A stretch of DNA of 64,000 nucleotides from Podarcis filfolensis (GCA_964270895.1 OZ185448.1); one strand, 5' to 3'; positions 8,932 to 52,050 are shown, numbered from the stretch's first letter. A program made the numbers and translations. Notes: generated by a model not told the origin, from the letters alone.

Positions 8932-9620
8932 AGCAACTGGTTCCCAACTCCGCAGATGCTGCAGCAGCCTCCTGCGCGCGCCTCTTAAGGGGAGAGCCGG
9001 CCGCGCGCGGATTGGCTCCTCAGAACGCACGTGCCCCACGAGGCGCTGGGGCGGGGATTCCCGTGGCCCCGCCCCCCGAGGGTGTCCCCGCCCACCTACC
9101 TAGGCGTGCTTAGAATAAGCAGGGCGTGAGCGGAGTCACAGAAGGGGCGGGGCTCTTTCCACTCCCCGCGTCGAACGGGCTGGGAGGGGCGGGGCGGAAT
9201 TGCATCTTCCTTCTCCTCTCCTGGAGAGATATACACGCTTCTTCCAGGACCCGAGGCGATCACAGCCGCTGTCCTGCAGCCCAACAGGCGCTTATCTCTG
9301 TTAGCGGAGCCCCCTCCCCTACGCGCCAGGGTTTGATCCAGCTTTTGCTCCTGCTGCTGGGCTCCGGTGATGTACCCCCAGCCGGCACCGAAGAATGAGG
9401 GCGACCCTTCCCTCTTTTCATCGGGTGGGGCAAGGGAGAGCTAACCCCTTTGCCTGCCGCGAAAAGGCGATCCCTCCCTCCGGCCCGAGGTCTGCCCCCC
9501 CAGTCAGGCCAGCGGCCTCCAAACGAGCGGAGGTGGGGAAGCTGCCTTGGCCCCCAGCTGCAGCGCCTGTCTACAATGCAGAGTGAGGGGCGGCAACCCG
9601 CGGGGCCCCTGCAATGCTGG
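8390..9620. promoter_or_regulatory. CpG island / MAP1A promoter
   Basis: Dense CpG. CCAAT on minus at 9011-9015, E-box CACGTG 9028-9033, GGGGCGGGG boxes near 9049, 9146 and 9187. Confidence 0.8.
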
Positions 9621-13405: not shown

Positions 13406-13619
13406 GCACCCCTCCTTCCTCTGTGGGTTCTGCTATGCCCTTGCACAAAGACAGTTCTAGGAGTGTGCCCTTGGTATCTCAGGTGTGCGGCCAGCCAGAT
13501 AATGCCAAGTGTCTTTCCATCAAAATCCCCCTTCGTCATCTGTGCCATCTTTGACAATCCACCTGGTGGAGCTGCATCTATTATATTATTATCGTTCCCT
13601 GTTCTAAAGGTGACCGGGC

Positions 13620-14780: not shown

Positions 14781-17700
14781 TTCTGCAGCCCTCTTGGTTT
14801 CCCGAGTAACCTTGGCGGGGTGGGAGAGGGAGGGGTTGTTTGCCGGACCCATTTCCTCCCTTTGGATGCTGGAGCCCTTCCACATGTGCTGAGGAAGTTC
14901 TTATCTTCTGATGCTAGAATCAGGCATGTCGCAGCTGGGCTTCGGTGTTTTGGAGCTCTCCCAGAGCCAGAACCTTGAAGGAGACTCCACAGCTAGTGTG
15001 GTTAGTGATAAGGAGCAGCTGCAACCCAAAGTGGCCTTGGAAGAAGAGGAGCAGGAGGAGGATTCCAAAGGCGGTAGGTGAAGTGGGTCTTTAGCTGAGC
15101 AGCCCTTTTCTCTGGGATAGGAAAACTTCACTCCAACCCTTCTGCGAAACTACCCACACTGCCTCAAAAGGACTTTGGGCCCAAACAGAACCTTCTTTCT
15201 TTTAAATCATCCTTACTTGTTCATTCATTAATTTGAAGAACATTTTACCCAGTTTACAATGTAGATGGCAAAAGCTTCCAGAATGGTTTACAAAGCAAGT
15301 GGTCCCTTCCCTTGGGCATACAGTCTAAAAGACATGCACTGGGCAGCAGGGTGAGTGGGGGAAAGCAAGCTCAGGCACCAGGCTTTAAACATATTATTTT
15401 TACAACAAGCTGGGATAGAGACAGGCCAGTTACTTCCCCTTCCTGCTGTTCTGCAGCTGGATGGATTGGCTGCCTCTGGGTGGCAGATGGGAGCTTTACA
15501 GTTCTGTTCTCCTAGTACTTACCAATAAACTGAGTCTCTGGAGTAACAGTACTTTTGTATACAGTATCCCTGCAAGGCAATTGAGGGACTGTAGCTGCCA
15601 GCGGTAGAGCATGTAGTTTGCAGGCAGAAACAAGGGAGCCTGACTGAGCTTGAGCCCTGGGAAGCTGCTCTCAGAATAGACTGTCCCAGACTCGGGGGGG
15701 GGGGGGGGCAAAAAATCTGATCACATATCAGGCAGCTTCTTATGTTCCTAAATCTTTTGAAGATAGTAATGCTGCTTGGATTGCAGTTGGATGTGATGTT
15801 ATAAGTATCTTTTGGGTTGGCACTCACTGCTATCCTGTTGTCTTCTCCATTAGAGATTGTCTTCTAAACTAACATTGAGTTGTATACTCTGAATAGACCC
15901 ATTGAAATTAGTAGACATGAGTGATCTAGGTTCATTAATTTAAGTTAGGTGCAATCTTAGCTGTGTACATAATAAAATTACCAATAAAATACATATAAAA
16001 CTAGCAAAAAAACCAAAGCCCATAATAGATAATAGGTCATACAGGGAATGCCAGCAGCCCTGAATCCAGGCAGATTTTGACTTGGCACCTAGATCGAAAT
16101 CAGATTTAGTAATTCTCTGGAAAAGTCCTTAGAATGCAACATAGTGCAGTTGTGCTCTGGTATTTCAAGTGAAGCACCAATTCCTGATGCTTTTTCTGCT
16201 CTGCATGCAGATCCAGATGAAGTGACAAAGTCTGGGAGTGACTCTCCTGATAGGTAAATATCTGCTTTCACCTCTCATACTTATTGGCTAACTTGTTGCA
16301 TGGTTGAACCTTCAGGAAAGGGGGTATGGAGAGCTTGCCCTCTCTGTAGGGGGTGCAGTTTCTTTGCCCATTAAACCAGCTGTGAAGCACATGTGGTTCC
16401 ATGAAGTCCTTCTTGCTGTCACACATGTGCCGAACATTCCTGCTGCTGGTAGGAGAGAAGCTGCTACTACTTTTCTGCCTTGTTCTTTGTGAAGGAAAGA
16501 TATTTTCATTCCTGTTAGTTGGGATTCGGCTAAAAGTATCGGAGGTGCCTTGCTGTTGCCTCCTGGCCAAAAAGGAAAGAAAGAAGGGACAGACCTTCCC
16601 ATTGGGATTTTGCAGGAGGGGGTTGCACCAAGGTGCTGCTGGCACTTTTACTAAACCTCATTTGAATGAGAAAAAAAGTTCCTTGACTCTTTTCTCTTCT
16701 GCATAACCTAAAGAAATGGTGGAGTAGCTTATATCCACACCCACTGGGATTTTTCAGGCCCAACAGCAAAGTTCTGTTTGCACCTTTGGCAAAGCTCAGC
16801 ACAAAAGCAAACATTCCTCCACTCCCCAAGTTCTGTGCATGCTTTGTGTCCTGTTTTTAACCCCCAGGGAAGCTATCAGCTTGTTTGTGTGGCATTCTTT
16901 CAGCTTGTCGTATTGTTTTTCTCAAGATGTAGTCCACCCTGGGGCCTTACAGTGAAGAGCAGGCAACAAATATAAACAATGACACCCTGGGGAATATTGA
17001 TTACACTTATGTTCCCAGCAGCACCCCAAAAATTCTGCAGTTCCATAAAGAACCTGCAAGGAGTCCAACTTCTGCCTGCCATCCACTTGACAGAAGGCCA
17101 CAAGGGACGGATCCCTCTGGGTGGCATACACAGGATGCTGATGTCTTATCTACTCAGGAGGACATGTTTGGCCAGAGCAGCACAACAGGTGAAAACAGAC
17201 TGCATGCCTGTGCCGTGGCCCCTGCGACCCATGAGGGGGAAGCAGGTGCAGTTTGCTGAAGCTCTGCCTATCCTGATAGCAAAGGAAGGTTTTCTACTTG
17301 ATTACTATATAGATAGTGCTACATAGGTTCATGGGACCACATAGACAGCTTAGGGTATGTCTCCTATGCACGACACACAGTTGCTGTGGTAGGAATGGTA
17401 GGCAGTTGCTTTGTGGATGATGGGAATTCCAGTGGCACTGATAAAGTTGCCTTTTCAATGGATGTGTTTCTATGTCACCCTTTGCTGTTGCTGCATTTTG
17501 AAAATGTCTTAGTGTTTTGAATTCTTCAAATTTTGCCTCTTTTGTTTGTGCAGATGGTTTTGAATATGTAGTGGCACAGATAACCAGTGCTGAACAAGTT
17601 GTACAGGGTTGTCAGATTCTAGCATGGGCTGCTCAAAATGTAGCTCATCAGTTGCATTGCTGACTTGCGTGCAGCACCCTGAGAGTTCTAGTTTTCAGGC

Positions 17701-29700: not shown

Positions 29701-32700
29701 AATATTTTTGATGTCAAGAAGGTTTTAAATACTTGAAGGTTGGTGTTGTATTGAGTGATGTTTCAAACTGGGGAAAGAATGCGGCAAATCATGTTGGGTT
29801 GCCTTGTGAGCAGCTTTATTTGGGCTTTGCTGTTTACCTTGAAATGCAAGGGATAAATTCTTTGTGCCCACAGCTCTGTGCCATGACCCTGGGAGCATGT
29901 GTGGGGCCTCCAGGGCATTGTGGCTGGCAGGCAGGCTGGCTGTGCAGAGGTTAACGCTGCCTTTGGTTTTCCTAGCCCTAGGAAGGGGGGCAGCCAGCCT
30001 CAGTCTCCAGTCCATCCTGACCATGCAGCAGTTACTGGGGGGTGTGAGGAGGAAGTGCAAGGCGTGATCAACCAGAGGAGTGGCAGAGCCCCTCCAACTC
30101 CTCGCAGACGAGGGCGAAGGGGCCGCCTCACATCGCGATCGGCCGGAGCCAGGTAGTGTGGTGAAGGTCAGCTGATGCTGATGAGGGAGGTGACCCTGGT
30201 GGGGTGGAGTAGCAAGAGCTAAAGGCCCTTGCAGCTTCTCCAGCTATTTCTCTCCCTGGATCTGCAGGGCCAGCCTGCCAGCTGTGGAGGATCTGTCAAC
30301 CACAGCCTTGCCAGAAGAGGACTGCTACACACATCGCCCTTTGAAGGGGCAGGACCGCAGCATCTCCCCTGAAATCCCCTTGCAAGAGCGTCTGGGGGTT
30401 TCCACCAGCACAGAGCTTTCCTCTGCCACCACCTCCTCTTCTGCGAACAGCTTTGTGGGCCTCCGGGTGGTGGCAAAGTGGTCCTCGAATGGCTACTTCT
30501 ACTCTGGGACTATCACACAGGATGTAGGGGGTGTCAAATATAAGCTGCGCTTTGACGATGGCTATGAATGTGATGTTCCAGGCAAAGACATCTTGCTGTG
30601 CGACCCTCTCCCCCTGGAAACAGAGGTGACGGCCCTTTCGGAGGACGAATACTTCAGCGCAGGTAACTCGTCTGGCTGGCAAGGGACCTGCAGTGTTTGG
30701 GGTGGGCGGTAGGGGAGAGTTGGGTCCCAGGCTGTGAGCTGCCCTTATGATGCCTTCTGCCTTGGCTGCAGGGGTAGTGAAGGGGCACCGGAAGGAGGCT
30801 GGGGAGCTGTTCTATTGCATTGAGAAGGAGGGCCAGCGGAAGTGGTACCGGCGGAGAGCAGTCATCTTGTCTTTAGAGCAAGGGAATCGGCTCCGAGAGC
30901 AATTTGGGTTGGGCCCCTACGAACCCGTCATGCCCCTGACAAAGGCGGCTGACATCAGCCTTGGTAAGCAGCCTGTAGGCAACTGCCCTGTGGGTCTGGC
31001 CGAGAGAAATAGGGACCCCTAGGAGCTTCTTAATTGAGGGCTGGAGCTGCAGGGTGCTGGCCTTGGGTAAACTTCAGTTTTAAGAGGCACAAGTGACTTC
31101 CTTCTGCTACCCTGCAGAAAACATGCAGGGTGGCCTTGGTGCTGCTGCGTGTTGAGGTGGGAGCTAACAACATTCTCCTTGTGGGGCTAGATAACCTGGT
31201 GGAAGGAAAGCGGAAAAGGCGCAACCTTGGCTCCCCCAGCACCTCCAACAACACAACACCCACCCGCAAGGGTCCTGAGAGCCCCCAGACCCCGCACAGG
31301 CTGTCTAGCAAGAGGAAGCTAGTTGCCTCAGAAGAGGAGAGATCCCCTGCCAAACGAGGGCGGCGGGCAACCCCTACAAAGCCAGGTCAGACTGTTTTAT
31401 GTCTCCTTGTATTGCATCTCTTCTCCCTGGACCAGACTTTCCCTTCTTGGTCTCCTCCAGCCTTTCCTCCCAAACCAGAGGAGCTGGAGCTGAGCTCTTG
31501 CACCAGGAGGATCAAGGCTCCCCTCCCTCTCCATGAGAGAAATTCTAAGTTGAGGCTGCTGACCTGCTGTCAGGAGGCAGCCACAGGACTTTGATTTTCC
31601 CCCCTCCCTCCACAGGGGCTGCCTGTTCCAGGGAAGCAGTGAGCCCATCTGTCAGTGGAGGGGACTTGGGAGATATCCCGGCACCAGATGACCGATGGGG
31701 GCCTATGCCCCACAACAAGACTCTCTTTCTGGGCTATGCCTTTCTCCTCACAATGGCAGACCCAACAGATAAACTCGCCAGTTGCCAGGAGCCTGCAGTG
31801 AGCAGCGAAGAGGAAGGTGAGCGCTCCATTGCTCCAGGGAGGCTGTTGGGGGGGTGGCCCTCGTTGTCTGAATCTGGTTAAGCCACTGCTCATTTAGGGT
31901 GGTGAAACTCCAGCGGGTGACAGAAAAGGCAGAACTAGGAAGGGACCCAAGGGGGCCCACCTAGTTTAGCATCTTGTTCACATGGGGGCCAAAGGAAGGC
32001 AGCTTGGCCAAGGATCCCTGGTAGGGATTCTGCTAGCTGTTGTTTCTGTCCTCTTTGCAGGATAGTGGTGTGCCTACAAGGGCTAAGGACGTGGCAAGTT
32101 GCGGGGCTGCAAGAACTTGAAGTCAGCAAGCCAGTATCTTACTGCACTTTCCAAAGTTAGTTTATTGAGGGAATAGTTGAACCTGGGACCTTGCACCTTC
32201 CCAGCCAGTGTGCAGGCACATCACAGGAGGGCTGTTGGGCAACATGACAGTGTGAAATCCCTTGAAGGCTACTTGAGGAGCCATGCCAGGTGGCAGTCAT
32301 GCTTTCTGCTATTCCAGGTCCTAGAAGCCCCAAAGATAAGGAATTGTCAAGTGTGGGGCAGAACATGTTTGCCATCTTGTGGCCCTCTAAGAGAACTCAG
32401 TGATTTGGGGATGAGCTGCAGATCTCTTACAACTTTCATGCTCCTTACAGCTACCATTTGGGGCTCGCTTTAGGGCTCAGAAAATAATTTCACTAACTTA
32501 ACAGCCAATTTCTGAACATGGCTCCAAGTGTTGGTGCTTACCTTTTAAAACCCTTTGCAGCAAGGGGCTTGGATTTTTGAAGGACCACCACCTTCTGAAC
32601 GAATCAGCCCAGGTACTGAGGTCATCATTGAAGGCTCTTCTCTGGGTTCCCCCTCCTTCTCTTAATTACATGGGTGCTATCTTGAAGGTTTTCTTGGCAA

Positions 32701-34779
32701 TAGCACACCCCTTTGGGTCACTTTCCTCACCTGTTACTACTATCTCTTATGTCATCTTGGCACTAGGTGAAGACCTTTCTGCGTTTCTCTAGGCATCTTT
32801 AAATGTCTAAATAATCTTCTGCTGTGCTGCACACGCGTTCTTGTCAATTGTATTATTTTCTGTTGAGTATAAAAGCAGTTCTTAGAGAACATTACTGAAC
32901 AGTGGAGAATAATTTTTAAAGTGAATAGCTGTTCATGATCATGTTTAGTCTCTGAACTGAATTTCAATGCAGTTGTTTTAATGTTCTTTATTTAACAAAA
33001 TTCATAGTTTACAAAGAAAAATCAAAATACTAACTTAAAAATTGACAGAAGCAAGCATTTAAAAGAAGTCAACATGCAGCTTTTAAAATATAAATAAAAT
33101 CTGAGATTTTGATTGTGTGGAAATGTTTCACAGTTCTCTTGCAAGGGAAGAAGTGTAGTGCTCTATTTATGCTAAAGAATTAACTCTGCTAACTTCATCC
33201 TGTTTTCTAGACTTCTTGGAGGTAACACCTTACAACAAACACTACATTGGACTGCAGCTGCAAGCTGGCGGTGGTTTCATCCTGGAGGACTTCAATGAAA
33301 GCCAGGTCAGGAGCCAGAGCTGGGGATGCATGAAAGTAGCATCACCCAGGTTGGCAGTGGAGATTTATTTGGAGAGGGTGTTGGTGCTTTGCTGCTGTTT
33401 TCCTTTTAATGATGAAATGGATGCTTTTCTGGGTGTGGTCCAAGGGTGGCAGGTGTGTGATGGGTGGCAGCTTCACCTGCACACAGGTTGTCAAATGGGA
33501 ATTGCCAGTTGTTCTCCTTTCAAGACCTGGGATGAGAAAAGGAGGTGCCTGGCCATGATGCTTCTTGGAATGGGACAGATCTTGATAGGGGCTGCTTGAA
33601 GTAGAGGCAGAGAGAGCCTCTTTTCCTTCCACTGGCACAATTCTCAATTCTCTACTTCTGCCAGTATTGAGCCTTCCATTTTGCAGTTAGCCTGGCTGGC
33701 TAGCTGTCAAATAAGCATTTGACCACACTGGGTGTTTTATACTGAACCTGCAGCCTCTTCCAGGGCTTTGTGTTTCTATGGAAGCCCAGGTCCCAGCCTC
33801 CACTTCCTTTGTCCAGTGCAGTGCAGCCTACCAGTGCTTCCTGATAGCAGACAGACACTGCCGGAACCGGATTTACTTTCTGTGCCTTGCCCGAGGAATC
33901 CCCTGTGTGTCTCACGTCTGGGTCCATGACAGTTGTCATGCCAACCAGCTGCAGAACTACCGGAATTATTTGTTGCCAGCTGGTTATAGCCTGCAGGAGC
34001 AGAGGTTGCTGGACTGGTAAGTCCGTGAATGTTGGAGGGACCATGAGCAGCTTACCCACCTGGTGCAGGTGGAACAGGGTGGCATGCCCAGTTCCCTTGC
34101 AGTGGAGCTGCCTCTAACCTTTCCTTCTTTCTAGGCACTCCCGTGAGAACCCTTTCAGTAAGCTGAAGGTGCTTCTGGTGTCCAGTGAGCAGCAGGACTT
34201 CCTGGAGCTCTGGTCTGAGATTCTTATGATGGGAGGCGCTGCTTCTGTTAAGCTGCAGGAATCTGCCTCATGGAGCAAAGGTACAAGCCATGGAAGGCAG
34301 CCAGCTGGTTTCTGTGGCGGGTAGATTGGCAAGAGGCTCTCCATTGCCCACTGAGACATACCAATCCCCCTGTGCAGAAAAGAGGCCTGCTTTAACATCG
34401 ATTCCTGAGGGTTGCTGAGAAGTTGGATGAGGCAGGGCAAGAATTGATTGGCTGCTTCTCCCTTCACCCCTTTCCTTGTGTGGAGCTGCCATCCATCCTT
34501 TTCCAAAGGCAGCAAGATCAAGTACCTGGTGCTGTGAACAAGCAGGAGGAAAGGTTTGACCACACAGAGCAATTCTTGTTTTCTATTTCCACAGATGTGA
34601 GTCTGGCTGTGTTTGATGTCGTGGTGACTGATGCTTCGTGCCCAACAGCTTTCTTGAAATGTGCTGAAGCACTACAGCTGCCAGTGGTGACCCAAGAGTG
34701 GGCGATCCAGTGCCTCATTGCGGGGAAGAAAGTTGGATTCCAGCACCCAAAGTATCAGCTTGATTCTGTCCCCAGTTGA
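14101..34779 (+). CDS. TP53BP1: Tumor protein p53-binding protein 1 (53BP1), complete CDS, 25 coding exons, 5526 nt / 1841 aa
   Basis: Exons: 14101-14486, 14567-14625, 14918-15073, 16211-16253, 17019-17188, 18132-18237, 18904-18995, 19274-19431, 19825-20974, 22077-22196, 23033-23257, 23571-23622, 24098-24193, 25662-26151, 27204-27356, 29200-29483, 29976-30152, 30268-30662, 30772-30963, 31191-31385, 31616-31816, 33211-33305, 33817-34016, 34135-34280, 34595-34779. All phases join in frame; all introns are GT-AG except one GC-AG (24194-25661). Recognisable motifs: [32 protein letters not shown] (LC8 site), oligomerisation region [22 protein letters not shown], tandem Tudor ([21 protein letters not shown]...FDDGY), UDR ([17 protein letters not shown]), NLS and tandem BRCT. 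The 43-nt exon 16211-16253 is the least certain. Confidence 0.96.
18300..18495 (-). mobile_element. tRNA-headed reptile SINE with CR1-like tail; related copies near 15600-15755, 22455-22620, 42390-42545 and 56765-56930
   Basis: gctgcctta...actgagtcag...ccatctagctcagtattg...gaattgaaccttgggccttc...tgctctaccact (antisense A and B boxes). Confidence 0.6.
24282..24887 (-). mobile_element. Solo LTR (606 bp)
   Basis: Ends TGTGGGAATGT...ACATCCCACA (TG..CA inverted termini); perfect 5-bp TSD CCCAG (24277-24281 and 24888-24892); AATAAA on minus at about 24462-24467. Confidence 0.78.
26491..26604. mobile_element. Tc1/mariner (Tigger/pogo-like) MITE
   Basis: TIR CAGTCAAACCTC / GAGGTTTGGCTG with TA on both sides. 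Confidence 0.75.
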
Positions 34780-35444: not shown

Positions 35445-36007
35445 CTCCTCTCCCTCAACGTGTGAGTGAGAGGAAAAGAAGCTGCACCAAACCCCACACA
35501 CAAAAAAGTAGAAAGAACACTTTCATTGGCAGACTCAGCCCAGAATGGAAATATACAGTATCTTCTCCCTGCTTCCGTATTTAGAGACACGAAATTACAT
35601 TTTCAAAAAAGCAACTTTCCTGCAGTTAATCGCACTTTTCCATTAAGAGTAGGTCAACGCTCGCCCTGATTTGCACAATGTGGCTTCTGGATGACGAGGG
35701 CAATGGGAGAACCTCCTTTGCTCACAGCCTTACTTGCAGTGCTAGCAGTAGAAAGAGCCAAATTCGCTGACAAGTGACAGCAGCATTTGAAAAAATTCAA
35801 AGTCAATGCTAAGCAGCACTTTCACTTCCAGAAAAACATGCAGCATAAGGAGAGCAGCACTAGAGACACATATAATGAAGCACACACTGACGGAGTCCTT
35901 TCTGAGTACCAGGATGAGGTCCCAATATCTCTCAGCACCTTCCCCTCCAGAAGTCAGGTTTGCTTCCCAGAAAAGGTGGCAACGGCCTTCATTGTGAGAC
36001 TGGTGGT

Positions 36008-39000
36008 CTATTCTAATCCCACACTGTAGAGAAAGAAGGGGCAGTTAATTAGAGGAAGGGCTCTGTGGCTGCAGAAGGGAGAAGGGTTGTGTAAATTGGG
36101 CACAGTAGCCAAAACTGCATGATGTTAGAGATGCACACACATATTATTTACAGACCACACAGCTGGTTATAAATACATTTATATCCCACCTTCTGGCTCC
36201 CAAAACAGAAACAGCAGAAAGTCTAGATGATGCCTAATCACATCCCTCTCACCAGCAGCTCTCAAATAGGCTTAAGACCTTGTGTGTTTCTTGGTTAGTA
36301 ACAGGCCTGTGTAATTAAAGATTCCCAGTCCTTGGGAAACCTTAAGCCCAAGAAGGCAAGGAAACGCAGGCTAAGGATGGCTGTAGAAGAGTCCACATTC
36401 AGGCAGAGCCTCCCAGCACCAGCAGGAATATAAATAAAGGGGCTTGTGTGGTTTCCTGGCACTCGCCAAGGCCTACCTGCCCAAGGTGCCTCCAGCCTGG
36501 GTATAGTATTTGTTGTAGTCAAGACGTAACAGCAACTGAGCCAAGTCTGAATTGATCTGGTGATTGTGAACACTGGAAAGGATCTTGAAAAGGAGTGAAG
36601 ACTGACAGCTGAAGCCCTGCAAAGGTAAACAGCACCCATGAGCCATAAATTGAGGGCTCTGCCTTAGCAGAAAGGGCTGAACAGAGAGCACTTGAAGGCT
36701 ACTCGAACCCATATGGGGAGGAAGCATCCCAGGCAACTGCCCCACCTCATTGCTCACCCTTTGGGAATTGCTGTCCTGGAGGAGGAAAGGCTCCAGCTGT
36801 TGCTGCCAGTATGCCACAAGGGCCTGACCAAGGCTGTTTCTGATGAGCTTCATGGAAGAGCAATGGCTAGACTTCTTGAGTCCCCCCCCCTCCCCCACCC
36901 CATGCTGAATTCATCAGAGAGCTGCCTGCTCTGAGTTTCCAAAATGCTTCCACAGGAGAGATGCCCCAAAAGCTTTGGGCGATGTTTTTCAGGTAGAAAA
37001 GTGCAAGGCCCACCTTGGCCAGGATGCTCAGCTGGGCCGTCCCCCGCTCATCCAATGGTCCCCGGTTCTGGCTGACAAGTGAGCAGAAGCTGTGGCATAG
37101 ATCCAGTATTTCATTCAGACAGTGGAAAGCCTGCAAAACCAAAGAGCAGAAAGGAGATGAAGGCCCAGAGGGCCTCACCAGAGCAGATGCTTCTTGTCTT
37201 GCCCTTCCGCAGCCTGAGATAATGACAAGATTCAGCAGGATTATTTGTGGACTGGTTTACTCAAACCATTTCACTTCTTGCTTAGTAGAGCAATTCTTAA
37301 GGTCTAATGGAGCTGATGCAAACAAACAAAACAAAACAAAAATCTTCATACACTGCACAGCAGCTACCAAAGCCTGAAATTTCTGTTCAAGCATCATAAG
37401 CTGCTCTAAACCTGAGTTTCCAAGACCAATGAACATACCTCCTTGCCTGGTGCTCTGGGGAAGGACTTTGACAGGCTTCTCCAGATTGCCAAATGCTACC
37501 AAGTCACCAGGAAGACACTCCCTCCAAAAACACATGAAGGCAAACTGACACACTTGCAGTTCATTTATTTTCTATCCTGCTTTTCTATACAGACCTGTAC
37601 CTCATAATTCACTTTAGCAGGTAAGGGCTTTGGTTGTGCTCATGGCCAAGCAACACAGCCATGTTCACAAGGGTCTGGCTTTTGCTTTAGTTCCTTCTTG
37701 CCATGTTTGCATTGAAGTGAGCTAGGGGTGCTGCACTGGATGGGCATTTGGACTATTCGAACATGACCAGTTCTTCTCCTGGGGACACAAGGCAAACAGA
37801 CTATGGGGATCACTCACTGGTTTCAGCAGAATGAAGGACTGTGCTAGGAGATTGCTCAAGAAGTGATCATGCGCCAGTCGAATGCTCTCAAAGTCACGGG
37901 TGGAGTTGATCTGCTGCAGAAGTTGGGAGAACTGAGACTCCAGAACATCCACCTGAGGATAAGGAAAAGTGAGGGAGAATATACTGCCTGCTGTTTCCAG
38001 TCATTTCCAGCCATCAATTTTTGGTGGGAGATTTAGGGTATCTCTGGGAGAACTGGCTGGTGCATATCCCTTGGAGGAGCAGCACCGAAGCCTCAGAGTT
38101 AGCCCCTGAGACCTGTGTTGCTGCTCACCTGCAGGTAGTACTGCAGATTGTCTACAAGGAAAGTCATGTGATGGCGCAGTTGCCATTTGATGGCATCTGT
38201 CCTGTTGGATTCCAGGCGCTTGCACCACATCTGTAGAGCCCAGCAGTGCTGCAGCTCAGCCTGGACTCGACGCACACTTAGCAGGTACTTGAAGACCACA
38301 TTGTACCTGCAAGCCAAGAGGAAGGCAACAAAAGATAGCTGGGTCAGGTCTCTGGAGCTCAGACCAGGCCAGCATCTCCTCCTCCCACCCACTACAATCA
38401 ACCTTTTGACACCAAAATGCCACAGAATCCACCTGGAAACAGAAACGGATAAAGTGGCCCTCACTTTTCCAGGACGGCAGGAGTAAAGAGGATATGCAGG
38501 GGCCACTGCACTCTGTAGGAGAGCCCCAGAGCAGCCCAGCCTGATGCGGGGGATTCATGGGGAGACAGTTCCCGAGAAGGCGTATCTCGAGCTTGAGCGG
38601 CATCTGAAAAGGAAGCCAGGAGGCAGGTGGGCAACAATACGGCTGCAAGCCTTGCTGGACCCCACCCTCCTTCCCTGCCACCCTCCTTCTCATTTTATCA
38701 ATGGGCAGCCAATGCAGGTGAGAGACTTGCTCCAGGCCACCCAGGGGATTGACAAGACTGGCCTTGGGCTTTGAACTCCCAGCTTCCCAGACCTAGGGCT
38801 GCCATTCTGCCTCTATGGAACCAAATTGGCTTTGTGGCTCTGTGCTTGCAGTTGTGGTGGGGCCTAAACCTGCCCTGCTCAGGGCTGCTTAGCTCCCTGG
38901 CACCAGCACCCACCTCGGTGCTCCTTTCCATAATAGTGGATGGTCAGGTGAAGAAGAGGAAGCAGGTTGTCATCATCAAGCAGCACTTTGTGGGCAGACT

Positions 39001-41124
39001 GCTGGAAGGCCACATTCACATCTGAGGAGGAGAGCCAGACCAGAACGACTTACTCCAGAAGAGCACATAGTGAGCAAGGAAGGCACAGTCACCTGTTTCC
39101 ACTCTCCCACCCCCCATGCCCTTTTCAGAGTTTGTGCCACAACAGCTTACAGAGCCAAACTGTGCCTATGCAGGAGCCAAGAGTCTTGGTACAAAGGCTT
39201 GAGAAGCAGGGAAATATCTGAGTGGAGAGTCGTCGGTCTAATCCACCAACCTTCTCATCAGCTCAGCCTAATGGAAAAGCCAGATCCCATGAAACTCACC
39301 ATGTTCTGTCACTGCAGTGGGAGGTGTCTTCAGCATCTGCTGTGCAGTGTCAATGAAGGCCTGAAACAGTTCTCCTCTCCCCAAGAGATAAAAATCTTTA
39401 ATAATCTAGAAAGAAGGAGAGAATGACTAAATGCATCAGGATACAGAACCCAGGAGCCCCTGCAAGCAACACTCCACTGGCAGGAGTGAGTCTCCTCCTG
39501 CACAAAGAGAAAGGAACAGCTTTGGAAGCTCCATATGGAGATTTGCATGTACCTTCAGTTGTCCTATTAAATCTGATTCTTCCACCATGAGCTTCCATAA
39601 GTGCTAAGGGAGAGAAAACAGTCCATCAGCATCAAGAACCAGGGATTCTCAGCAGCAGCAGCTGCTGTGAGCACCTTCCACCCCACTGCAGCCAGGACTT
39701 GATCTGTTTGCTTTGAGTGACAGAGACTATTTGCCCATTGCTGGACAGGCTCTCATGCTCTATATGGCAGGACTGACAAACAGCCGGTCTATGGGATATT
39801 GTAACAGTTGAGGCTTTTTAAAAGCTTAATTATTGTGCAAGGTGCATTAGCAAAAGACAAATGTTAATTCTGGATCCCCACCTGTCACCCCTCCCCCCGC
39901 ACCAATTAGACTTTTGAAAAGCAGGGGAGAGGACTAATATCACCTCACTCTATGCATTGATCTGTCATTAAAATCAAATCTCCCCCACAGAGATTAGGCT
40001 TTATTAAAGCTTTTATTGTTGCTAATGGGAGCTTTTAACATAGTGAGGCTTTCTTGAGAGGGGAGAGAATTCACGGAATGGATGCTGGTGGTGGTGATGG
40101 GGTTGCTCTGGCCTGGCCTGGTGCTTTTGACTCCATCCCTGCCAGCTTCCTAGCATGTAATCCCAAGAAGGAATGTGACCCTCAGCCTGAAAAAGGTTTT
40201 CCAACAGGCTCTGGCGAGGGGTTTGCAAATGGCTCCCGGCTACCTCACAAAGAACTTAGCACATGCAACTCTAGAGCTACCGCTGACCTCCGCCACAGTG
40301 CTCCGTATCCAGTCCACCACTGTCTCAAAGTCCACCAGGTTGAAGAGAGGCTGCTGTTTGAGGCGATGCAGCTCAGCCGCAAAGGTGTCCTCCTGGTTCT
40401 TCAGGATGGAGCCTGTGAGGCAACAGAAGGCAAGGAAGGGTGGCCTAATCTGGACACAAGATGCCAGTCATGGCCTCCATCAGCAGAGCTTCGCAGAGAA
40501 CAAAGGCTGTTCAAGGCTGCATCAAGATCCAGCTTGGAAAAGTGGAGGAGAGGAAAAGGGGAAATTGCTCTCCCACTTTTTCAAGCGAGTTCTTGAATAG
40601 GTCAGAATTTAAGACTGGAGAGTGTTTGAATTGTAAGAATTTGAAGCCTTTCAAGCTCCTGAAACACACTGAGCTTCAATGAAGTTTTACATCTGTGAGC
40701 ACCAGAGCCTGTTCTCCTTTTTGCTTTGTGGCTGACAGATGCCAACAACCCGAGCTTATATAGTAGACGACCAAGATGCTTCAAATATTTTAAACAGATG
40801 GAAATGGAAAACAGCTTCACTCCAGCCCACTGAGGACTGTGCAGTGCATCTGATGGCAGCAGATGCAACTACAATTTGGGAAACCGGTAACAAAGCAGAC
40901 AATGGAGGTGGGCTGAGGACGGTCTGCCTTTGTTTTCTCCTGGAAACAGCTGGCTGGTATTAAGTCAAAAAATCTCTTGCTGTTCCAAAGTGGCCTTCCT
41001 AAGAGGAGGGCATTGTGGCTCCAAAATATTTTCAGTGCTTCCCAGTCGTTCTGTATTAAGTACAAATACCAGAGCTAGGAGGAAGCAGGTCCTTCCTTGG
41101 ACCTGTTTTAAAGTGTGTGTGTGT

Positions 41125-41156
<32 letters not shown>

Positions 41157-44100
41157 CCCCCCTTTCTCTGGCAGAGCAGAGCAACCATCAGAAAGCAGAG
41201 CAACCATCAGAGAGCTAGACCCAGCAGGAAGAAATTTTAATTCACTGTAAACATTAAAGGCACCTCCTTGGGGGCTGTATTGGTGAGGCAAAGCACCAAC
41301 AGGGCCTCACTTTTTCTTTTCTTTTTACCAAAAGCTATGGAGCCACCATAGTAGGGACACTGGTGGCGTTGTGGTCTAAACTACTGAGCCTAGGGCTTGC
41401 CAATCGGAAGGTCGGCGGTTTGAATCCCTGCAAGGGGTGAGCTCCCATTGCTCGGTCCCAGCTCCTGCCAACCTAGTAGTTCAAAAGCACATCAAAGTGC
41501 AAGTAGATAAATAGGTGCCGCTCCGGAAGGAAGCTAAATGGTGTTTCTGTGCGCTGCTCTGGCTTCGCCAGAAGCGGCTTTTTCATGTTGGCCACATGAC
41601 CTGGAAAACCTGTCTGTGGACAAACATCGTCTCCCTCAGCCAGTAAAGCGAAATGAGCGCCGTAGCCCCAGAGCCATTCGCGACTGGACTTAACTGTCAG
41701 GGGTCCTTTACCTTTACCTTTATGGAGCCACCATACTGTACCCCAAGGAAAGAGTGGCAGAGCAAGGGGAAGGGGTGGCTCAAGTGCTTTGCAGGGAGGG
41801 TCCATTCCATCTTGCGCAGACCCCTGATGACGCATCCCAGCACTTCCCTGCTGGGTGCCCTTATGAATGGACAGCCAAGAAGCAACCACCCTGCAGCTTT
41901 CAATCCTTGCTGCCCCCATGCAGAATGAAATGAGTCAAAGTGTCTCCTACCTTTTTTGGTAAGGCTCACATTTTGACTCTCAAACATCTGGACAGACTCT
42001 CCCACAAAAAGAATCTTCTCAGCAACTCGCACAGGGATGTAGGATGGCAGCATTTCAATCCGCAGAGAGAACTGCTTTGGGGATGGTGCCAACATGTTCT
42101 CCTCTTCAATCAGCCGCTGTTGGAAGGAGAGGTGAAAATGGGGGAAAGTCAAAGAACCCCACAGACAAACGTGGGGGCTCCAAGTAGAAAGCCCCACCCC
42201 CAATCCTGAGGTGTGTGTTAAGACTTAGTTGGAACCACCAAGCTGTGTCAGTGGGGAGCGGAGCAGGATTCTTGATCCATGAAACAATGGCTGAGGAGTC
42301 AGAAAAGAATACTTGAGCTATCAAAAAAGAAAGTTCTAGATCCAACTACAAAAAGATGACCGGAGGGGACTGAGCAGGTTTCACGAGGCAAGAGAGCACC
42401 TGGCTCAGTGACTAAGCATCTGCTTTGCACGCAAGCAGCTTTGCATGTCCAACCCCCCAACAACATCTCCATGTGGGACCAGGAGAAGCCTGTGAAGCCC
42501 TAGGGAGGGGCTGCTAGGCAGTGTGGACTATGCCGATCTAGAGGGATTGGGAGGCAGATTCAGATTTCTTTGTATCTAGCACCCAAACCTCACCATGTCC
42601 TGCAGCTCTCGCAGCTGTTTCCCCGTCAGCCCTCCGATCCCCAGGTCCTCCTCCTCCTCTTCTGGCTGAGCAGGGACAGACCCCGAGGAAGGGCCTTGCT
42701 TGATGAAGAACTCCTCATGTTGGTCCAGGAGCAGCCCGTGCAGCATCCAGGCAGAGAGCTGCTTGTACATGGCAGCATGGCACATGGCCAAGACCCTGGA
42801 GGGGGGCACAGCAGCAGAGGGAAGGGGGCTTGACCAGGCTGCAGCCACAATGGAGCTGGTGCCATTGGTGGCTGGAGACAGGGAAACAAGCACCATCCAA
42901 GGCAACAGTGGGACTTTAACTTATTCAGGGGGCAGGTTCCCGGGACCCATAACCTGGCATTCCTCTTTAGCGCTTGGGCAGGAGCCTCCAGGAGGGTTTC
43001 TTACTTTTCCAAAGCACGGCGCACGGGTGGCAGGCCACCTCGGCTGTGTCTGTGAACCACCTCCAGGATTTGACAGCCATGAATCTGCAAAGGAAAAGCA
43101 GATCCCTTGCAAGAGCTGATGTTGCCATATGTTCCTACAACACTGGCTGGCAGCTGGATTATGGAAGGTCCAGAGACCAGCTAGCCTAGATGGAGGAAGA
43201 GGAGCCCATCTTAAGCTCCTCATCCACATGCAGGCAGCATTTCCAGCTCCCTGCTCTACTTTTCTGCAGATGATGGTACCAGAACTCCTACTTCCCATTT
43301 TTCACCTCCACTGAGGTGAGAGAAATCAGCACCATCTCAGTTACACACAAGATTTGCCCTCTCTTTTCAAATCAAGCCAGGCAGGTGCCTATAAAAAGAG
43401 GGCCACCACCAAGGGAGATCAGGATTCTCAACTGTACCTTCTGGGTCTTTATTTGCTCCACCACAGTCATCAGTGAGGGGAAAAGGAGCTGGAACTGCAA
43501 AACAAGAATCAGCTGGTGAGGAATGATTTGCTAGTTTGAGACAAGGATGTGGAAAAAGAGAACAGAGTGTTGTACTTAATGTGACAGACAAGATCTTTTT
43601 CTAATGTGGGTTGGGAATCCTTCTATGAGCTGCTCCTCCCACTCACTGCAATAGGGAAGGCTATGCAGAACAGCCTGTGTGGTAAAGTGCCTTTCCTAAT
43701 TTCAATGTCACATAGCAAAATGGAAGTATCTTCCTTCTTGCACAGGGGCTTCATTTGTGTGTGGCCTTCATGCTTTGTCCCCCCCCCTGCAGTTGGGGCT
43801 CCCCCCCCCGATAGTCTACCTAAATAAGTAGACATCTACTAAGATGACCTCCCTAACTTCATTAATTCTTCAAGGAATGTTATTTGCCCCCTTTTAAGGT
43901 GCAGACACTGTACCTGCTGTGTAGGAGACACTCAAAGATAAAAGTGTCAGATTTCTCTTGCTTAGGACATCAGAAATTGGAACTGGCTGCCAAGATTCTA
44001 CTCACAGAGATTCACTCTGCCAAGGTACATTTCCTAAACCACACACAATTACTTGCACCACACTTTAGGTTTTTGCAAACTTTCTGTGTGATCAGGATCA

Positions 44101-47100
44101 TGTTCCTTAAGATAATGCCTGTGCAAGCCTTTTTCTCGAAACGAGAAAGGAAAGGCCTTCCATGTTGCCTATTGAACATCAGGCAAGAATGCAATAACTA
44201 ACAAGGATCAACATCAATGCAGGCTATAAATGCAATTCGGAAGACTAAGCTTCCCTTCAGACCCAAAGTACATATTAAATACTGCACAAAAGATGTGCCA
44301 CCTTAATGAACCTGTTGGAAGAGGCATGTGGATTGCAGCCTTCTAGTTTCTCTGTGTGTCTACAGAGTTTCCTTGTGAAAAGCTCTGATGCTGCTGCCGC
44401 CACCTGGGCTGGGTCCAGAATTTTGCTATTATCACTGAAAATGGGCATCTGCCTAAACTAATGTTACCTTTCATGAGCAGGCCCTTTGCTCATAGGATGG
44501 GTACTCTAGCAAAAACTTGAGCTTGCCTAGGCAGCCCCCTGCCCCACAAGAATGTGGTCTGATTAACCCCCTTGTCTTCCTTCAGTGCAGCCTGCAATGT
44601 AGAATAATTTTCAGTGGAAGGCAGCCAACAGGAGTTAAGAGTGATGCATACATAATCATCCCTAGGCAGCTCTCCTTTCTCTTTGGCGGGAAGAGAGACT
44701 GAGTCCCCTGTCAGGATCCGGCCTCTCCAAACTGACTAGTCCCTTAAGCAGGTGAATAAAGGTGCTCTGGGGGAAAGCTGGTAAGTGGCGCCTCAGATGG
44801 AGCCAGAGCTCTTGTATAAGACCCTCCATTCTCATATTCTAGTCACTCAGGATGATAAACCTTGTATCTCTATTTCCAAGCTTCCTGTGTCCCAAGAGCC
44901 TCTCTCTGAGAGACTCAAGAAAGTACTCACCCATTGCTCACACTGGCAGTTCACAGGATGTCCCTTGGGGCAGGAGGGACCTTACAGAGATTGGGATAGC
45001 CAATGAATCAGACTGAGGGAAGGAAGAGAATCCTTGCCTTTATGGAGGTTGTGTCAAGGCTTGCTCCTGCCTCAGATTTTTTTATTTATTCCACTGCAGG
45101 AAAAGGATCGGAGACAGGAAAGTGGCCGTGGAGCCCCATCCCTTGTGCTAGAGCTCCAGGGCTCAGCCAGACAAGAGCAGTTGAGGTCCTGCCCTTCAAA
45201 ACAGACCTCCAGACCTTATTCAAGTCAGTGTGAACTAATACAGCTCACTCATATATATGAGCCTCTTTTCAGCAGGCAACCATGAAGAGAAGGCACCATC
45301 CAGAGAAGGCAGCTCCTCTAAAAGAAGAGAGGTATGGACAGGGAGAACTCACTTGATCCAGCGAATAATTGACATGTGAGATGGTAAGGTGAGGATCGGC
45401 CAGGAACTGCAAAAAATGAAAGGTGGAGGTGAGAGACTGGAGTAAGTCTTTGTTTTGACTTGTTGTTTTGCAATCCCTAAGTTGCACAAGCAGAGAAGGA
45501 GCACTCCCTGGAGCTTTTTTAATATAGCAGTTATGCGGATGGCACTGTTTTCTACAGAGATCCAACATACATGGGTAGTATAAGCAATGCATGACACTGG
45601 CTGGCATGTCAAGAACTGTCTGTGTCCAGACCTTTTAGGTCAAAGCAGTGGGATAACAAAGCAAGGTTTATTCAGTATATTCGTTACCTACACTGGCCTG
45701 TTGCTTTTAAATTACAAATTGGTAAGCGCTGCTTTGAGGCATAATCTTTGGCTATGGAGCCCTATGCCCGAAGCCAGGGAAAATACAGAAACTTGGTGCA
45801 GGTTGGCTTGTCAGGTAAGGACCTGCTGGGTCTGGAACCACCTCCAGGCTTAGCACCTGCTTCTGTGGGGAAGGGAGCCTCCTCCACCCTGAGCTTTCAA
45901 TATTGCATTAAGCTCCTCTTGCCCATTTTCTCAACTAGCCTTTTCTCACCTCCTCCTTCTGCTCCTTGCCTGCTCTTCCCCCCCCAAAAAAACCCCATGT
46001 TGCTGCCTGTTTGGGAGATTCCTTCATCCTCTTCAACTGTGCTTTCCCTGCTCTTGCCTTCCAGGACTGTGCACCTGGGAACTCATGAGTTGGTGCTTTG
46101 GGCATCATGGTCAATGAGTTGCCCCAGCCCTGCACTCACTCTGGGCTCATTTTGGGTCTGTGGCTGCTGCCGACCCTTGACTTACACCCAGAGTACTAGG
46201 CTGGAACTGATTGGCTGCCAGTAACCAGATCCCCTGGGACGTTTTAGAGCTTGGTGTTAGAAATGCTGTCCTTTTATAGCCATGTCTCTCTTTCCGTGCC
46301 CCCCACCCCCATCCCCAAAGCTCAGGAGGTAGCTGCAACCAGTTCTTCTCTCTGAGCTTCAATTTTGCAACTGGCTCAGATGGGTGGATGCTGTGACCCT
46401 GCTGCTTACCAGAAGAGAAGCCTGTCTTCTGTTGCTTCAAGGGACCAACACCTCCTCTGTGGTTTAGCTGCTACAGAGCTACGCAGCCATAGTGCTGGAA
46501 TTTAATGCTCATCAGCATTTTTGTCTGCATGGCTAATGATTTTGTCTCTGTTTATAATGAAGGACATCATCAACAGATGCAATTTGATTGGTACTCTCTC
46601 TGCTAAGCAAGCAAGCAGTCATTTATGCTCTATTCTTGTACAATGTCTAGTTGTGGGGTGGCTTAGTGAAAAGCTGTCATGAATACAGATTAACAAACCA
46701 CTATTAGTGGCAAAAACCTGCAGTTGGATTTGATGGGCAGAGCATCATGCAATATTTACTACAGAAACCCACTGTGTCCTTACCTCCTGCTCCAAGTCAA
46801 GCAGGGCCTGCCGGTATGGACGCAGCACGGCATCAAGCCCAGTGCAGAAAGCCCGCAGATAAATCCCTTGCTGGGAGGGGTGCAGATCCTGAAAGTGGAT
46901 CAAGGAAGGGTTAATCTCCTGGCATGCATAAGGCTCTAGAACCACATCTATTCCCATGAGTGGAAGCGACCCAAAGGCAACGCAACCCCCCGTCCCTCCA
47001 TTGTTGTGGGACTGCATCCTGCCTCAAAAGCCCTTGCACAGGAGGTGCAATTAGGAGAAGGGCTTGTTCAATAAATGAAAGCCTTGCTTTTCAAGAAAGC

Positions 47101-47927
47101 TCATCCGCAAACATCACTGTTTTTTGACAGCAGTATTACAGTATAACGTTCTTCCATAAAAGTAGCCAAAACAATGAACACCCCCAAGGCCCAGCAATTG
47201 AAAAAAGAAAGCCAAGGGAAAAATAAACCTCGGAGGATCTCATGGACAGGGATGTGAGGCCCTTCTAGGCATTGAGGGGCAGGAGGGAGAGAGATATGGA
47301 GGCGGCCGGCTGCAGCCCTTGATGTTCTGGCTCTTTGGGGACTCGAGAATGGACGGAGAGAAACAGCCTGTGAGGGAAAGGGCCGAGTCGCTTCCGCAGA
47401 GGGTCACTGCCCATAAACGGCCGGAGAAGGGACAGGCAAGCGGGCAAAAGTGGGGGCCTCGCTTGCCTACCTCTGCACATGCTCAGGGGACCGCTCACCT
47501 GCGGCTGTACGGGCAGGGCTGCTGCTGCTGCTGAAGGGGCTGACGGGGCGCCGGGGGGAGGCTGCTGCTGCTGCCCGCCCTGCGAGGGGCCTCCTTGCGA
47601 GGGCGGCGGCTGGACGTGCTCGGCTGCGAACTGCTCGACGAAGTCGCTGAAGCGAATGTAGAAGGCGCCGAGGCGGCAGACGCGGGCCAGGAGGGCGGCC
47701 TCGCTCGGGTGAAGGAAGGGCGGCAGCACCGGCTCCTGAGGCACCTGCGGGAGGGGAGGGCAACGAGAAGCCGGTTAGGGTGGGAGGCGGCGGCGGCGGC
47801 CTGGGGCGCCTCTTCCCCAGGGGCCGGAGCGGGAAGCCACCTGCAGGCAGACGCTGCCGCCGCCTCCAACGGCGACGAAGAGGCCTCCGGTGTAGCCGCG
47901 CAGCGCCAACAGCAGCTCGTGGATCAT
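36008..47927 (-). CDS. TUBGCP4: Gamma-tubulin complex component 4 (GCP4), complete CDS, 18 exons, 2112 nt / 703 aa
   Basis: Exons in transcript order: 47841-47927, 47499-47744, 46784-46888, 45353-45406, 43438-43494, 43005-43084, 42594-42795, 41951-42116, 40288-40412, 39553-39603, 39300-39405, 38914-39021, 38465-38603, 38129-38306, 37818-37952, 37014-37130, 36477-36616, 36008-36023. All GT-AG and in frame. Starts MIHELLLAL; contains [61 protein letters not shown] and [19 protein letters not shown]; ends SVGLE* (last exon less certain). Confidence 0.96.
41124..41156. repeat. Compound (CA)n(TA)n microsatellite
   Basis: Read directly from the sequence. Confidence 0.85.
41354..41720 (+). mobile_element. 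Sauria SINE, full length, in a TUBGCP4 intron
   Basis: gggacactggtggcg head, (ACCTTT)n tail; 15-bp TSD TATGGAGCCACCATA (41336-41350 and 41721-41735). Confidence 0.9.
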
Positions 47928-48373
47928 CGCGGCGGCCGGCGAAGAGCGAACGGCGGCGCCCCGCAAGGCCCGACGGGAAAAGTAGGGGGTGCGCGCGCCT
48001 ACCGCCTCCGAGCGCATAGAGCTAGCAAAAGGTTGGGAAGGGCGGGCGGCCCTCACCGCGCGTGGCTCCTTGGCCGGGCACTGCAAAGCTGAGCGGGACA
48101 GCGCTTCAAACCGCGAGGAGCGCGGCAGCAGGAGATCTGTGCGCGGAGTTGCAAAAAAACGAAACACGGGCGAGGAAGCCAATCGTAGCAGGCGCTGTAG
48201 GGAAGATTTTGGGGGCGAGGCGGGGTTGTGCTTTCAATGCATTGCTTGTACGTATAGAGCTAGCAAAAGATAGCAGAAGCAGGAGGCTCTCGGCTGCGGG
48301 GCTGCGTTCAAACCGCCCGCGACTTTGGATGGAGGAGACGCGGGTTTCAGAATAGAATTCGTAAGATGCCACG
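47370..48373. promoter_or_regulatory. CpG island / TUBGCP4 promoter
   Basis: CpG-rich over exons 1-2. CCAAT at 48179-48183; two TTCAAA (TTTGAA on the gene strand) at 48105 and 48307. Confidence 0.78.
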
Positions 48374-50230: not shown

Positions 50231-52050
50231 AAAATTCCAGCAAACCGAAATACGGCCTCGTTTCTTCGTGGGCTCGCCAAAATCTGCCATCTTTAAAGGA
50301 AACGAACCTTCTTCGCCCCACTTTTATCAATGTGCCCCGTTGTGACTTTGATTCCTCCCGCTTTGAGGTGCCATCCCCACCCCCGAGCATGCGCAGAATG
50401 TCTCCTCTTTCCTCAGGGAACAAGCAACCGATTTGCTACCAAGCAGGGCTGAAGCCATCCAATGCCTCTCATTCCCGCATAGTATAGCTAGATCGCCCTG
50501 GAGCTGCCCTTATATCGGTGGGGCTCCCTCCTTCCCGAGGAAGCGGAGGCAGCTCGCTCCGTGGTGGCGTCCGCCTGTTTCCTGCAGATCCTTCGCGGTT
50601 GCACTGGGCGAGGAGTCAGCAATGCAGAGTTGCAAACTGCAACCGGGCAGAACACCACCCCCCCTTTCCAAATGGGTCCCTTTGCCCCAGTGTCCTGTTT
50701 CCAACCGCAGCTAGCCCGGAGCCGCAACAAGGAGGCGGAAAGCGGGCAATACGAAGGCAAGACCTTCCTCGTCGGCAACAGCGGGGTATCCTGCCTCTGG
50801 ACATGGAGGTTCTCCGCGGAGTCGCGCGTCTTCAGGAAAGGGACCGTGCATCGCCTCTCCGGCTCTTCTCCGGTGGGAGCCCTTTCCCCGCTGCGGCGCT
50901 CCCCGGAGAGGCTCCAGCCGCCGCTTCTTCCAGCAAGTGCCCGCTGGGCGGGGCGACCTGGCGGAGGCTCCTGCCAAGCTGGTTGGGCTGGGAGGTGCAG
51001 CCGGAGACACACCCCGCTGGGCTGGCCCGACAGCGCCGCCGCCGCCGCGCCAGGAAGGAGAACGGGCGGCCGCTCCCTACCGCCTTCCCCTCCGCCTCCA
51101 CCTCCTCGCCGCCGCCCAACGGACGGAGCGGACACTCCCCTCCCGCGTTCCGAGCAGCCGCCGCAGCCTGAGAAACAGCAGCAGCCTTCTCGTCCCGGCC
51201 GGACGACCGACGGGCTCCGACTCGACGGAACCGCCGCTGCTCCCTCTGCCTTGGCTCGTCCTCATGGCCACCCCGGAGGAGATCGACGGGGCGGGCGTGG
51301 CCCGGCCCCACTACGGCTGTGAGTCTCGGGCCGAGGGAGGGAAGGGCGCGTTGCTTGCGGCTTGAGAGATGCCTCGGGCCGTCGGTTTGGTGCCAGCGTC
51401 TCCTCCTCCTCCGCCGGGGCCGCTTTGTTGGAGCTGGCGCCCAGGCACAGCCCTTACCGGGCCCGGAGGAATCGTTCCGCCTGGCTCGCTTGGCCCGGGG
51501 CTGTGGGTTTATTTGGCCGAGCAGGAAGCCGGGCCCTCTGTGAAAGTCTCGGCGCCCCCTGCCTCCCCATCGCCCCCTCAACATGGCGGGCAGGAAGCAG
51601 CGCTCCCCGGATTGCTCGTGTGAACGGCCTGCCTCGCCGAGCGGCGCGCGTTTCTCTCGGGCTCGTTTGCACGCGCTGTCGCTTTTCGCGGGGTCACGGG
51701 CCGGGTCTCCTATTGGGCATCTTTGAGCGAAGCAGCCGCTTTCTCTCGCGCTCTTTCTTTTCCCGGGAGGGCCGGGGGGGTGGGGAGAGAGGAAGAGGAG
51801 GAGGCCCGATTTTAGGGGCCGTGGAGCGGGGTAAGGACCGCTCCCCTCCCCGAGCAGGAAGGGCGGCGACGTGCAGCTCCTGGGGCGGGTCCTCGGCACG
51901 AACTGCCCGTTCTCCCAGCTCCATGGATGCCTCGTTTCACCAAGCGCAGGAGGCTTGGCTCCCACCGAGCAGGGTGGCAGCCTTTGAGCGAATCAAACCT
52001 CCATGGTTGAGGGCAGTCTACCTTTCCACGTGGGCGTCAGCGGATAACTC
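50150..52050. promoter_or_regulatory. CpG island / IQGAP1 promoter
   Basis: CpG-rich over exon 1; NRF1-like GCATGCGC near 50387. Confidence 0.78.

Follow-up and report, generated by a model that had tools for sequence, protein, structure and literature searches.

Results

The TP53BP1 locus and the altered BRCT motif

We analysed a 64,000-nucleotide stretch of DNA from the lizard Podarcis filfolensis (GCA_964270895.1 OZ185448.1), hereafter called the window, which contains the TP53BP1 gene on its plus strand. The first BRCT domain of the encoded protein, 53BP1, carries R-N-R-I-Y at the place of human R1811-T1812-R1813-K1814-Y1815, with isoleucine in the position of the phosphate-binding lysine, K1814. 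The features of the gene used in this study are listed below; X15 and X18 denote two sets of RNA-like contigs described in a later section.

30284-30709, plus strand: intact open reading frame (ORF) with the first 53BP1 Tudor exon (Pfam 53-BP1_Tudor, E 1.2e-42)
31702-31816, plus strand: first exon of BRCT1, with L-L-T-M-A containing T1737 and M1738 (ORF and sequence, GT donor, in-frame stitching)
33211-33305, plus strand: second exon of BRCT1 (exon B), with Y-N-K-H-Y containing K1773 (AG/GT borders; the loose end of an X15 contig joins exon C)
33817-34016, plus strand: third exon of BRCT1 (exon C; beta3, alpha2 onward), with the altered R-T-x-K motif, N1845 and D1861 (PDB match, AG/GT borders, RNA-like contigs)
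33865-33867, plus strand: Asn at human T1812, codon AAC (translation, codon comparison)
33871-33873, plus strand: Ile at human K1814, codon ATT (translation, codon comparison)
34135-34280, plus strand: linker and BRCT2 exon (Pfam BRCT_3, E 8e-08; splice joint 34015>34134 in X15 and X18)
34595-34779, plus strand: last BRCT2 exon, stop codon at 34777-34779 (Pfam BRCT_3, E 2.4e-18; splice joint 34278>34593 in X15 and X18)

Positions 33859-33879 (+) are translated as C-R-N-R-I-Y-F, within which CGG AAC CGG ATT TAC at 33862-33876 (+) encodes R-N-R-I-Y. This segment lies opposite positions 88-92 of the 249-residue chain 1gzh_B, and residues were numbered with that chain taken as 1724-1972. Two separate codons are changed, since geckos and skinks have ACC (Thr) and AAG or AAA (Lys) where the window has AAC and ATT. 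A preliminary description of this DNA had reported Ile (ATT) at 33871-33873 and RNRIY for RTRKY, had numbered the changes T1812N and K1814I in BRCT1 of 53BP1, and had considered a sequencing error unlikely; translation, the alignment with 1gzh_B, and the agreement of P. muralis DNA and the RNA-like contigs bear out these three points. The remaining phosphate and peptide contacts, T1737 and M1738 (within L-L-T-M-A), K1773 and R1811, are kept, as is R1813, and the p53 contacts N1845 and D1861 are also unchanged, so that the retention of T1737, R1811, N1845 and D1861 claimed in the same description holds in the exon translations. Among the residues that mark a phosphopeptide-binding tandem BRCT, T1737 in the beta1-alpha1 loop, the backbone NH donor M1738, and R1811 with K1773 are therefore present, and both the Lys of T-x-K, which begins helix alpha2, and its Thr are missing; the pocket is degenerate, as the preliminary description had it. 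In addition, lacertids have gained an arginine at human Q1808 (Q1808R), in the loop just before the helix.

Exon C matched the BRCT chains of human 53BP1 in a PDB search (1gzh_B, 1kzy_C and 5ecg_C; E ~1.5e-39) as well as Crb2 (Rhp9, PDB 2vxb; E 5e-4). The five BRCT exons, when stitched, give a 246-residue open frame to the stop with AG/GT at all borders checked, and with solved 53BP1 BRCT structures available at ~85% identity, the predicted BRCT fold is not in doubt. The Tudor ORF matched PDB 5zcj_C (E 3.8e-44) and 4cri_A (~4e-44), with the positions of W1495, Y1502 and D1521 unchanged; the 53BP1 Tudor domain is a methyl-lysine reader that serves recruitment to breaks. Podarcis TP53BP1 proteins align with the window in about 21 collinear tblastn segments over 14.1-34.8 kb, the identity being 93-94% over the whole protein and ~99% in the BRCT pair. 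Within the pair, two residues differ from P. raffonei, and the synonymous divergence from P. muralis is 0.06; by these values the window comes from a close relative of P. muralis, P. raffonei and P. lilfordi that is distinct from all three. The last BRCT exon also has residues private to the window among lacertids, W-A-I-Q (not W-V-I-Q) and F-Q-H-P (not F-K-H-P), in the region of 34690-34695 and 34735-34740. The BRCT pair, the upstream tandem Tudor domain, the collinearity and a gamma-tubulin complex gene as neighbour (see below) are all found, indicating that the stretch holds a single, functional TP53BP1 orthologue of a Podarcis-like lacertid. Note that there is no N anywhere in the 64-kb window and that no Rfam match was obtained within it.

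Further assemblies and transcripts carry the same motif

Three separately assembled Podarcis genomes, those of P. muralis, P. raffonei and P. lilfordi, have RNRIY in their annotated proteins. At the DNA level, the codons AAC and ATT recur at the P. muralis locus (L008). Furthermore, RNA-like Logan contigs of two other organisms, one per study (X15 record 5; X18 record 9), span exon C with 0 differences from the window. Contigs of both sets carry the GT..AG joints 34015>34134 and 34278>34593, and the junction of exon B with exon C is seen in an X15 contig. Since exon C and the splice joints are covered by these contigs, the exon is transcribed and spliced as modelled; the RNA-seq check suggested in the preliminary description was thus run, and the contigs matched the window in exon C. 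The lacertid state at K1814 is real and not a sequencing or assembly error.

The X18 contig shows 16 differences from the window, all of them in the intron upstream of exon C. One X18 contig is continuous over 33300-34015, including that intron, and is then correctly spliced to the next exon, which could reflect a retained intron, pre-mRNA or DNA carry-over. X15 contigs lack 3 bases at 34189-34192, in frame, giving one Gln fewer in S-S-E-Q-Q, as in the P. muralis protein; the organism behind X15 is thus probably P. muralis or a species near it. The DNA runs X3 and X12 gave no matching contigs, a zero that may be false, and the window's 80-residue ORF had no exact match among assembled contigs.

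Distribution of the motif among squamates and other vertebrates

The sample comprised 53BP1 from about 25 squamates, many birds, an alligator and mammals, obtained by a representative scan and two region-limited word searches, with codons read from genomic loci L005-L011. When the 68-residue exon was used as the word-search query, only three short fragments were returned (quail, pangolin and a bird Logan ORF), all with RTRKY. The states of the motif and of codon 1814 were as follows.

RTRKY: geckos Eublepharis, Euleptes, Sphaerodactylus and Paroedura, two skinks, Elgaria, Varanus, Phrynosoma, Sceloporus and Anolis; AAG (gecko), AAA (skink)
RTRKY: pythons, colubrids, elapids, vipers, alligator, marsupials and about 110 bird entries; AAA (bird)
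RNRIY: Podarcis (3 species) and the window; ATT
RNRMY: Lacerta agilis and Zootoca vivipara; ATG
RTRLY: the amphisbaenian Rhineura floridana; CTG
RTRQY: the boa Candoia aspera; CAG

In total, RTRKY was kept in 17 other squamate species, the alligator, mammals and nearly all birds sampled, and the pattern R/x-T-x-K-Y holds in distant homologues down to ~40% identity. Two other gecko variants retain Lys1814, namely RNRKY in Heteronotia and RTQKY in Gekko japonicus. A general lizard trait was rejected because RTRKY persists in geckos, skinks, Elgaria, Varanus, iguanians and most snakes; the change, which the preliminary description had placed "in lizards", is limited to Lacertidae, as Ile or Met, apart from a related Leu in Rhineura.

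Lys1814 was absent from all five lacertid species and from all six species sampled in Lacertibaenia, the group that unites Lacertidae and Rhineuridae in the NCBI taxonomy. Rhineura is also the closest non-lacertid BRCT sequence (85% identity). The Met of Lacerta and Zootoca is literally K1814M. At 1812, the codon is AAC in the four lacertid DNAs and ACC in Rhineura, Tiliqua, Candoia and Eublepharis, and T1812N (ACC to AAC) is found only in lacertids within Lacertibaenia, Rhineura keeping Thr. The alignment across squamates and other amniotes, which had been proposed earlier, thus places the loss in Lacertibaenia. On these sequences, the loss of Lys1814 is read as old and fixed in the lacertid lineage and is probably older than Lacertidae. 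The codons suggest a path in which AAG (Lys) would have changed to ATG (Met) before the split of Lacertidae and Amphisbaenia, with ATG later becoming ATT towards Podarcis and CTG in Rhineura, and T1812N arising on the lacertid stem. Such a single origin takes three steps and independent origins take four; the path from Lys through Met to Ile or Leu is a parsimony argument on one codon, with no ancestral reconstruction.

Losses of pocket residues in other lineages

Thr occupies position 1814 in four of four tinamou species (P0181, P0232, P0256 and P0260), two of which, both Crypturellus, also have R1811Q. Rhea, emu and kiwi (P0167, P0178 and P0188) have RTRKY in an exon otherwise the same as that of tinamous. 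As judged from these entries, tinamous are a second putative clade-wide natural loss of the 53BP1 phosphate pocket. In exon C of Candoia aspera (L010:34396-34595; P0164 and P0333), Gln (CAG) stands at K1814, and pythons, colubrids, elapids and vipers keep Lys; K1814Q of Candoia is an independent single-step loss. K1814T was found in the knifefish Brachyhypopomus gauderio (P0042), CNRKY (R1811C and T1812N) in the cordylid Hemicordylus capensis (P0159) and the goby Neogobius (P0047), and CNRPY in the mudskipper Periophthalmus (P0044). R1811Q also occurs in three unrelated birds, Hippolais, Sapayoa and Colius (P0297, P0262 and P0255). The residue replaced in these R1811 variants, as in Crypturellus, is one that human 53BP1 needs for USP28 binding. 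Tinamous, Candoia and Brachyhypopomus resemble lacertids in the independent natural loss of the same Lys from an otherwise unchanged exon; unlike in lacertids, the replacements are polar rather than hydrophobic and T1812 is kept.

In a set of 133 unique tetrapod BRCT sequences, six residue states (K, T, I, M, L and Q) occurred at position 1814, the maximum of any exon C column, and more than half of the exon C columns were invariant. Note that this set consists mostly of birds and squamates, and the count of states per column is descriptive only. Variation was also seen at other contact positions. At the p53 contact N1845, Asp is present in iguanians (Anolis, P0012 and isoforms; Phrynosoma and Sceloporus, P0165 and P0166) and in two geckos (P0017 and P0273). 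At K1773, Anolis has Gln and the phrynosomatids Phrynosoma and Sceloporus have Arg, and at T1737 snakes have Ser.

Selective constraint on the BRCT pair

Pairwise Nei-Gojobori ratios of nonsynonymous to synonymous substitution (dN/dS) over 244 codons were 0.09-0.29 among lacertids and 0.10-0.18 in the other comparisons. The codon-model omega was 0.24 for Rhineura with lacertids and 0.20 for all eight sequences. The BRCT pair, which is much more conserved than the remainder of the protein, is under purifying selection and is not decaying, as would be explained if binding of p53 (N1845 and D1861) and USP28 (R1811) has been kept.

Neighbouring features

A gamma-tubulin complex component gene lies at ~36000-48200 on the minus strand, tail-to-tail with TP53BP1, as identified by Pfam matches to the N- and C-terminal parts of GCP and a start ORF at 47775-48182. 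This gene is consistent with TUBGCP4, which stands tail-to-tail with TP53BP1 in human likewise. GC-rich stretches that resemble CpG islands, with long ORFs overlapping one another on the two strands, were seen at 8300-9100, 13600-14900, 47300-48200 and 50500-52200, the second coinciding with the 5' end of TP53BP1 and the third with the 5' end of the gamma-tubulin complex gene.

Discussion

Predicted consequence of the change at K1814

In the human complex, pSer139 of gamma-H2AX is held by T1737, the M1738 backbone, K1773 and K1814, and R1811 recognises the ligand's free C-terminal carboxylate (Baldock 2015, PMC4688034), which supports the phosphate-binding role given to K1814 in the preliminary description. 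The same study reported that K1814E abolishes peptide binding, that a BRCT pair with this change is not recruited to laser stripes, and that phosphorylated ATM (pATM) then does not become focal. K1814M has been used as a gamma-H2AX-blind mutant; its foci were normal in number, and its retention at breaks was reduced (PMC7666136). In the study of Cuella-Martin 2016 (PMC5065530), USP28 binding was weakened by R1811A and unaffected by K1814M, K1814M restored Nutlin-3 sensitivity like the wild type, and p53 binding was enhanced by both K1814M and R1811A. More recently, K1814M alone was reported to fail to accumulate on vesicles with phosphatidylinositol 3-phosphate (PI(3)P), and R1811A/K1814M to have negligible affinity and slower early focus assembly (bioRxiv 10.64898/2026.04.18.710733). 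The earlier suggestion that K1814M impairs USP28 binding is contradicted by PMC5065530. Since K1814M binds USP28 normally and keeps p53-dependent function in that study, the defect in 53BP1-USP28-p53 surveillance that had been put forward for the lizard is not predicted.

If the human data transfer, absence of the Lys ammonium group would abolish or greatly weaken binding of the lacertid BRCT pair to the gamma-H2AX tail with pSer139, and its binding to further phosphate ligands of this pocket, such as PI(3)P, would be affected likewise. Lacertid 53BP1 would still reach breaks through its intact Tudor domain, and would still bind p53, with N1845 and D1861 kept, and USP28, with R1811 kept. Reasoning from the human mutants, we consider it reasonably probable that gamma-H2AX and PI(3)P reading is lost or much weakened in lacertid 53BP1 and that its p53 and USP28 functions are kept. 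A separation-of-function allele is plausible here, as Lacerta and Zootoca carry exactly Met. Human K1814M and K1814E and the lacertid state concern the same protein and the same residue (Met in Lacerta and Zootoca, Ile in Podarcis), with R1811, K1773, T1737 and the p53 contacts intact; the lacertid state differs in being natural, fixed across the family and accompanied by T1812N and Q1808R, and its loss of gamma-H2AX binding, shown for the human mutants, is predicted. With the canonical tandem BRCT domains of BRCA1 (pocket residues S1655/K1702), MDC1 (T1898/K1936) and Crb2, the lacertid domain shares the fold and the pocket architecture; unlike them, it has neither the Lys nor the Thr of T-x-K and would by motif fall outside the phospho-binding class.

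Several points weigh against this interpretation. Three other phosphate contacts (T1737, the M1738 backbone and K1773) are still present together with R1811 and R1813, and with the lacertid Arg at human Q1808, phosphate binding may be partial or rebuilt. The effects of human mutants may also not transfer to a background that has diverged by ~15%. As for the age of the loss, the sample is without teiids, gymnophthalmids, other amphisbaenians and non-Lacertinae lacertids, and the single origin rests on an advantage of one step.

Alternative explanations

The strongest alternative holds that the pocket is compensated, T1737, the M1738 backbone, K1773 and R1811 supplying the charge together with R1813 or Arg1808, in which case the substitution would be nearly neutral in function. 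K1773 does contact the phosphate in the human complex (PMC4688034), K1773, R1811 and R1813 are kept, Q1808R accompanies the Lys loss in all lacertids, and the constraint on the domain is not relaxed. However, human K1814E or K1814M alone abolishes binding despite the presence of K1773, R1811 and R1813 (PMC4688034, PMC7666136), and the lacertibaenian replacements are hydrophobic (I, M and L), with T1812 changed too. Rhineura has neither the Lys nor Arg1808, and the snake Ahaetulla has both, indicating that Q1808R and the Lys loss are not coupled. The constraint, moreover, can be accounted for by p53 and USP28 binding alone. We regard a compensated pocket as rather unlikely, and favour a pocket that would be blind, or nearly so, to gamma-H2AX.

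A further possibility is that the loss of the pocket was itself selected, for example by freeing the BRCT pair from gamma-H2AX chromatin toward p53 signalling, and that this was repeated in vertebrates. In its favour, K1814M and R1811A raise p53 binding in human cells (PMC5065530), 1814 is the most variable column of an otherwise nearly invariant exon, and the losses in tinamous, Candoia and the knifefish are independent, with R1811 also lost in the cordylid, gobies and some birds. On the other hand, weak constraint on the residue would predict such recurrence equally well and would agree with how mild the pocket mutants are in phenotype (PMC5065530, PMC7666136), and no ecology or physiology is shared among the losing lineages; adaptive retuning is improbable. 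A broader statement, that the pocket has been dismantled repeatedly and specifically in vertebrates (Lacertibaenia, tinamous, a boa, a cordylid, gobies and a knifefish) within a nearly invariant domain, that gamma-H2AX and PI(3)P reading is not its conserved job, and that the loss was perhaps favoured, is offered only tentatively, and we think it doubtful as a whole. If it were true, the losing lineages would be natural K1814M-type knock-ins, in which repair of heterochromatic breaks and ATM retention run without the contact between 53BP1 and gamma-H2AX.

An artefact, whether a sequencing or assembly error, a pseudogene or a paralogue, had no evidence in its favour and is scarcely credible, and the error and pseudogene readings were rejected, given six independent lacertibaenian assemblies without the Lys, three of them, from Podarcis, with the same motif, spliced RNA-like contigs from two organisms with an identical exon, the open frame with AG/GT borders, omega of ~0.2, the gamma-tubulin neighbour, and a word search in which a second Podarcis BRCT protein was not seen.

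Significance

The purpose of the 53BP1 BRCT pair has long been unclear, and the pair is dispensable for end-joining and class switching. The roles given to it in the cited work are a secondary one in focus formation (PMC7666136), gamma-H2AX-dependent ATM retention and heterochromatin repair (PMC4688034), and control of p53 and USP28 (PMC5065530). Literature searches turned up no work that connects TP53BP1 with lacertids or squamates. As far as these comparisons go, the lacertid change is a natural variant of a well-known domain: evolution has in effect knocked in a mutant that is standard in the laboratory, and the change belongs to a pattern that recurs in other lineages.

A lizard family, and probably a larger clade, thus carries the residue change that is used to blind this domain to gamma-H2AX, in a domain that is still strongly constrained. 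This provides evolutionary evidence that the constrained function differs from phospho-reading, the simplest candidate being the binding of p53 and USP28. Lacertid cells and easily kept lacertid species would be natural material for studying the contact between 53BP1 and gamma-H2AX, with skinks and geckos as natural revertant controls.

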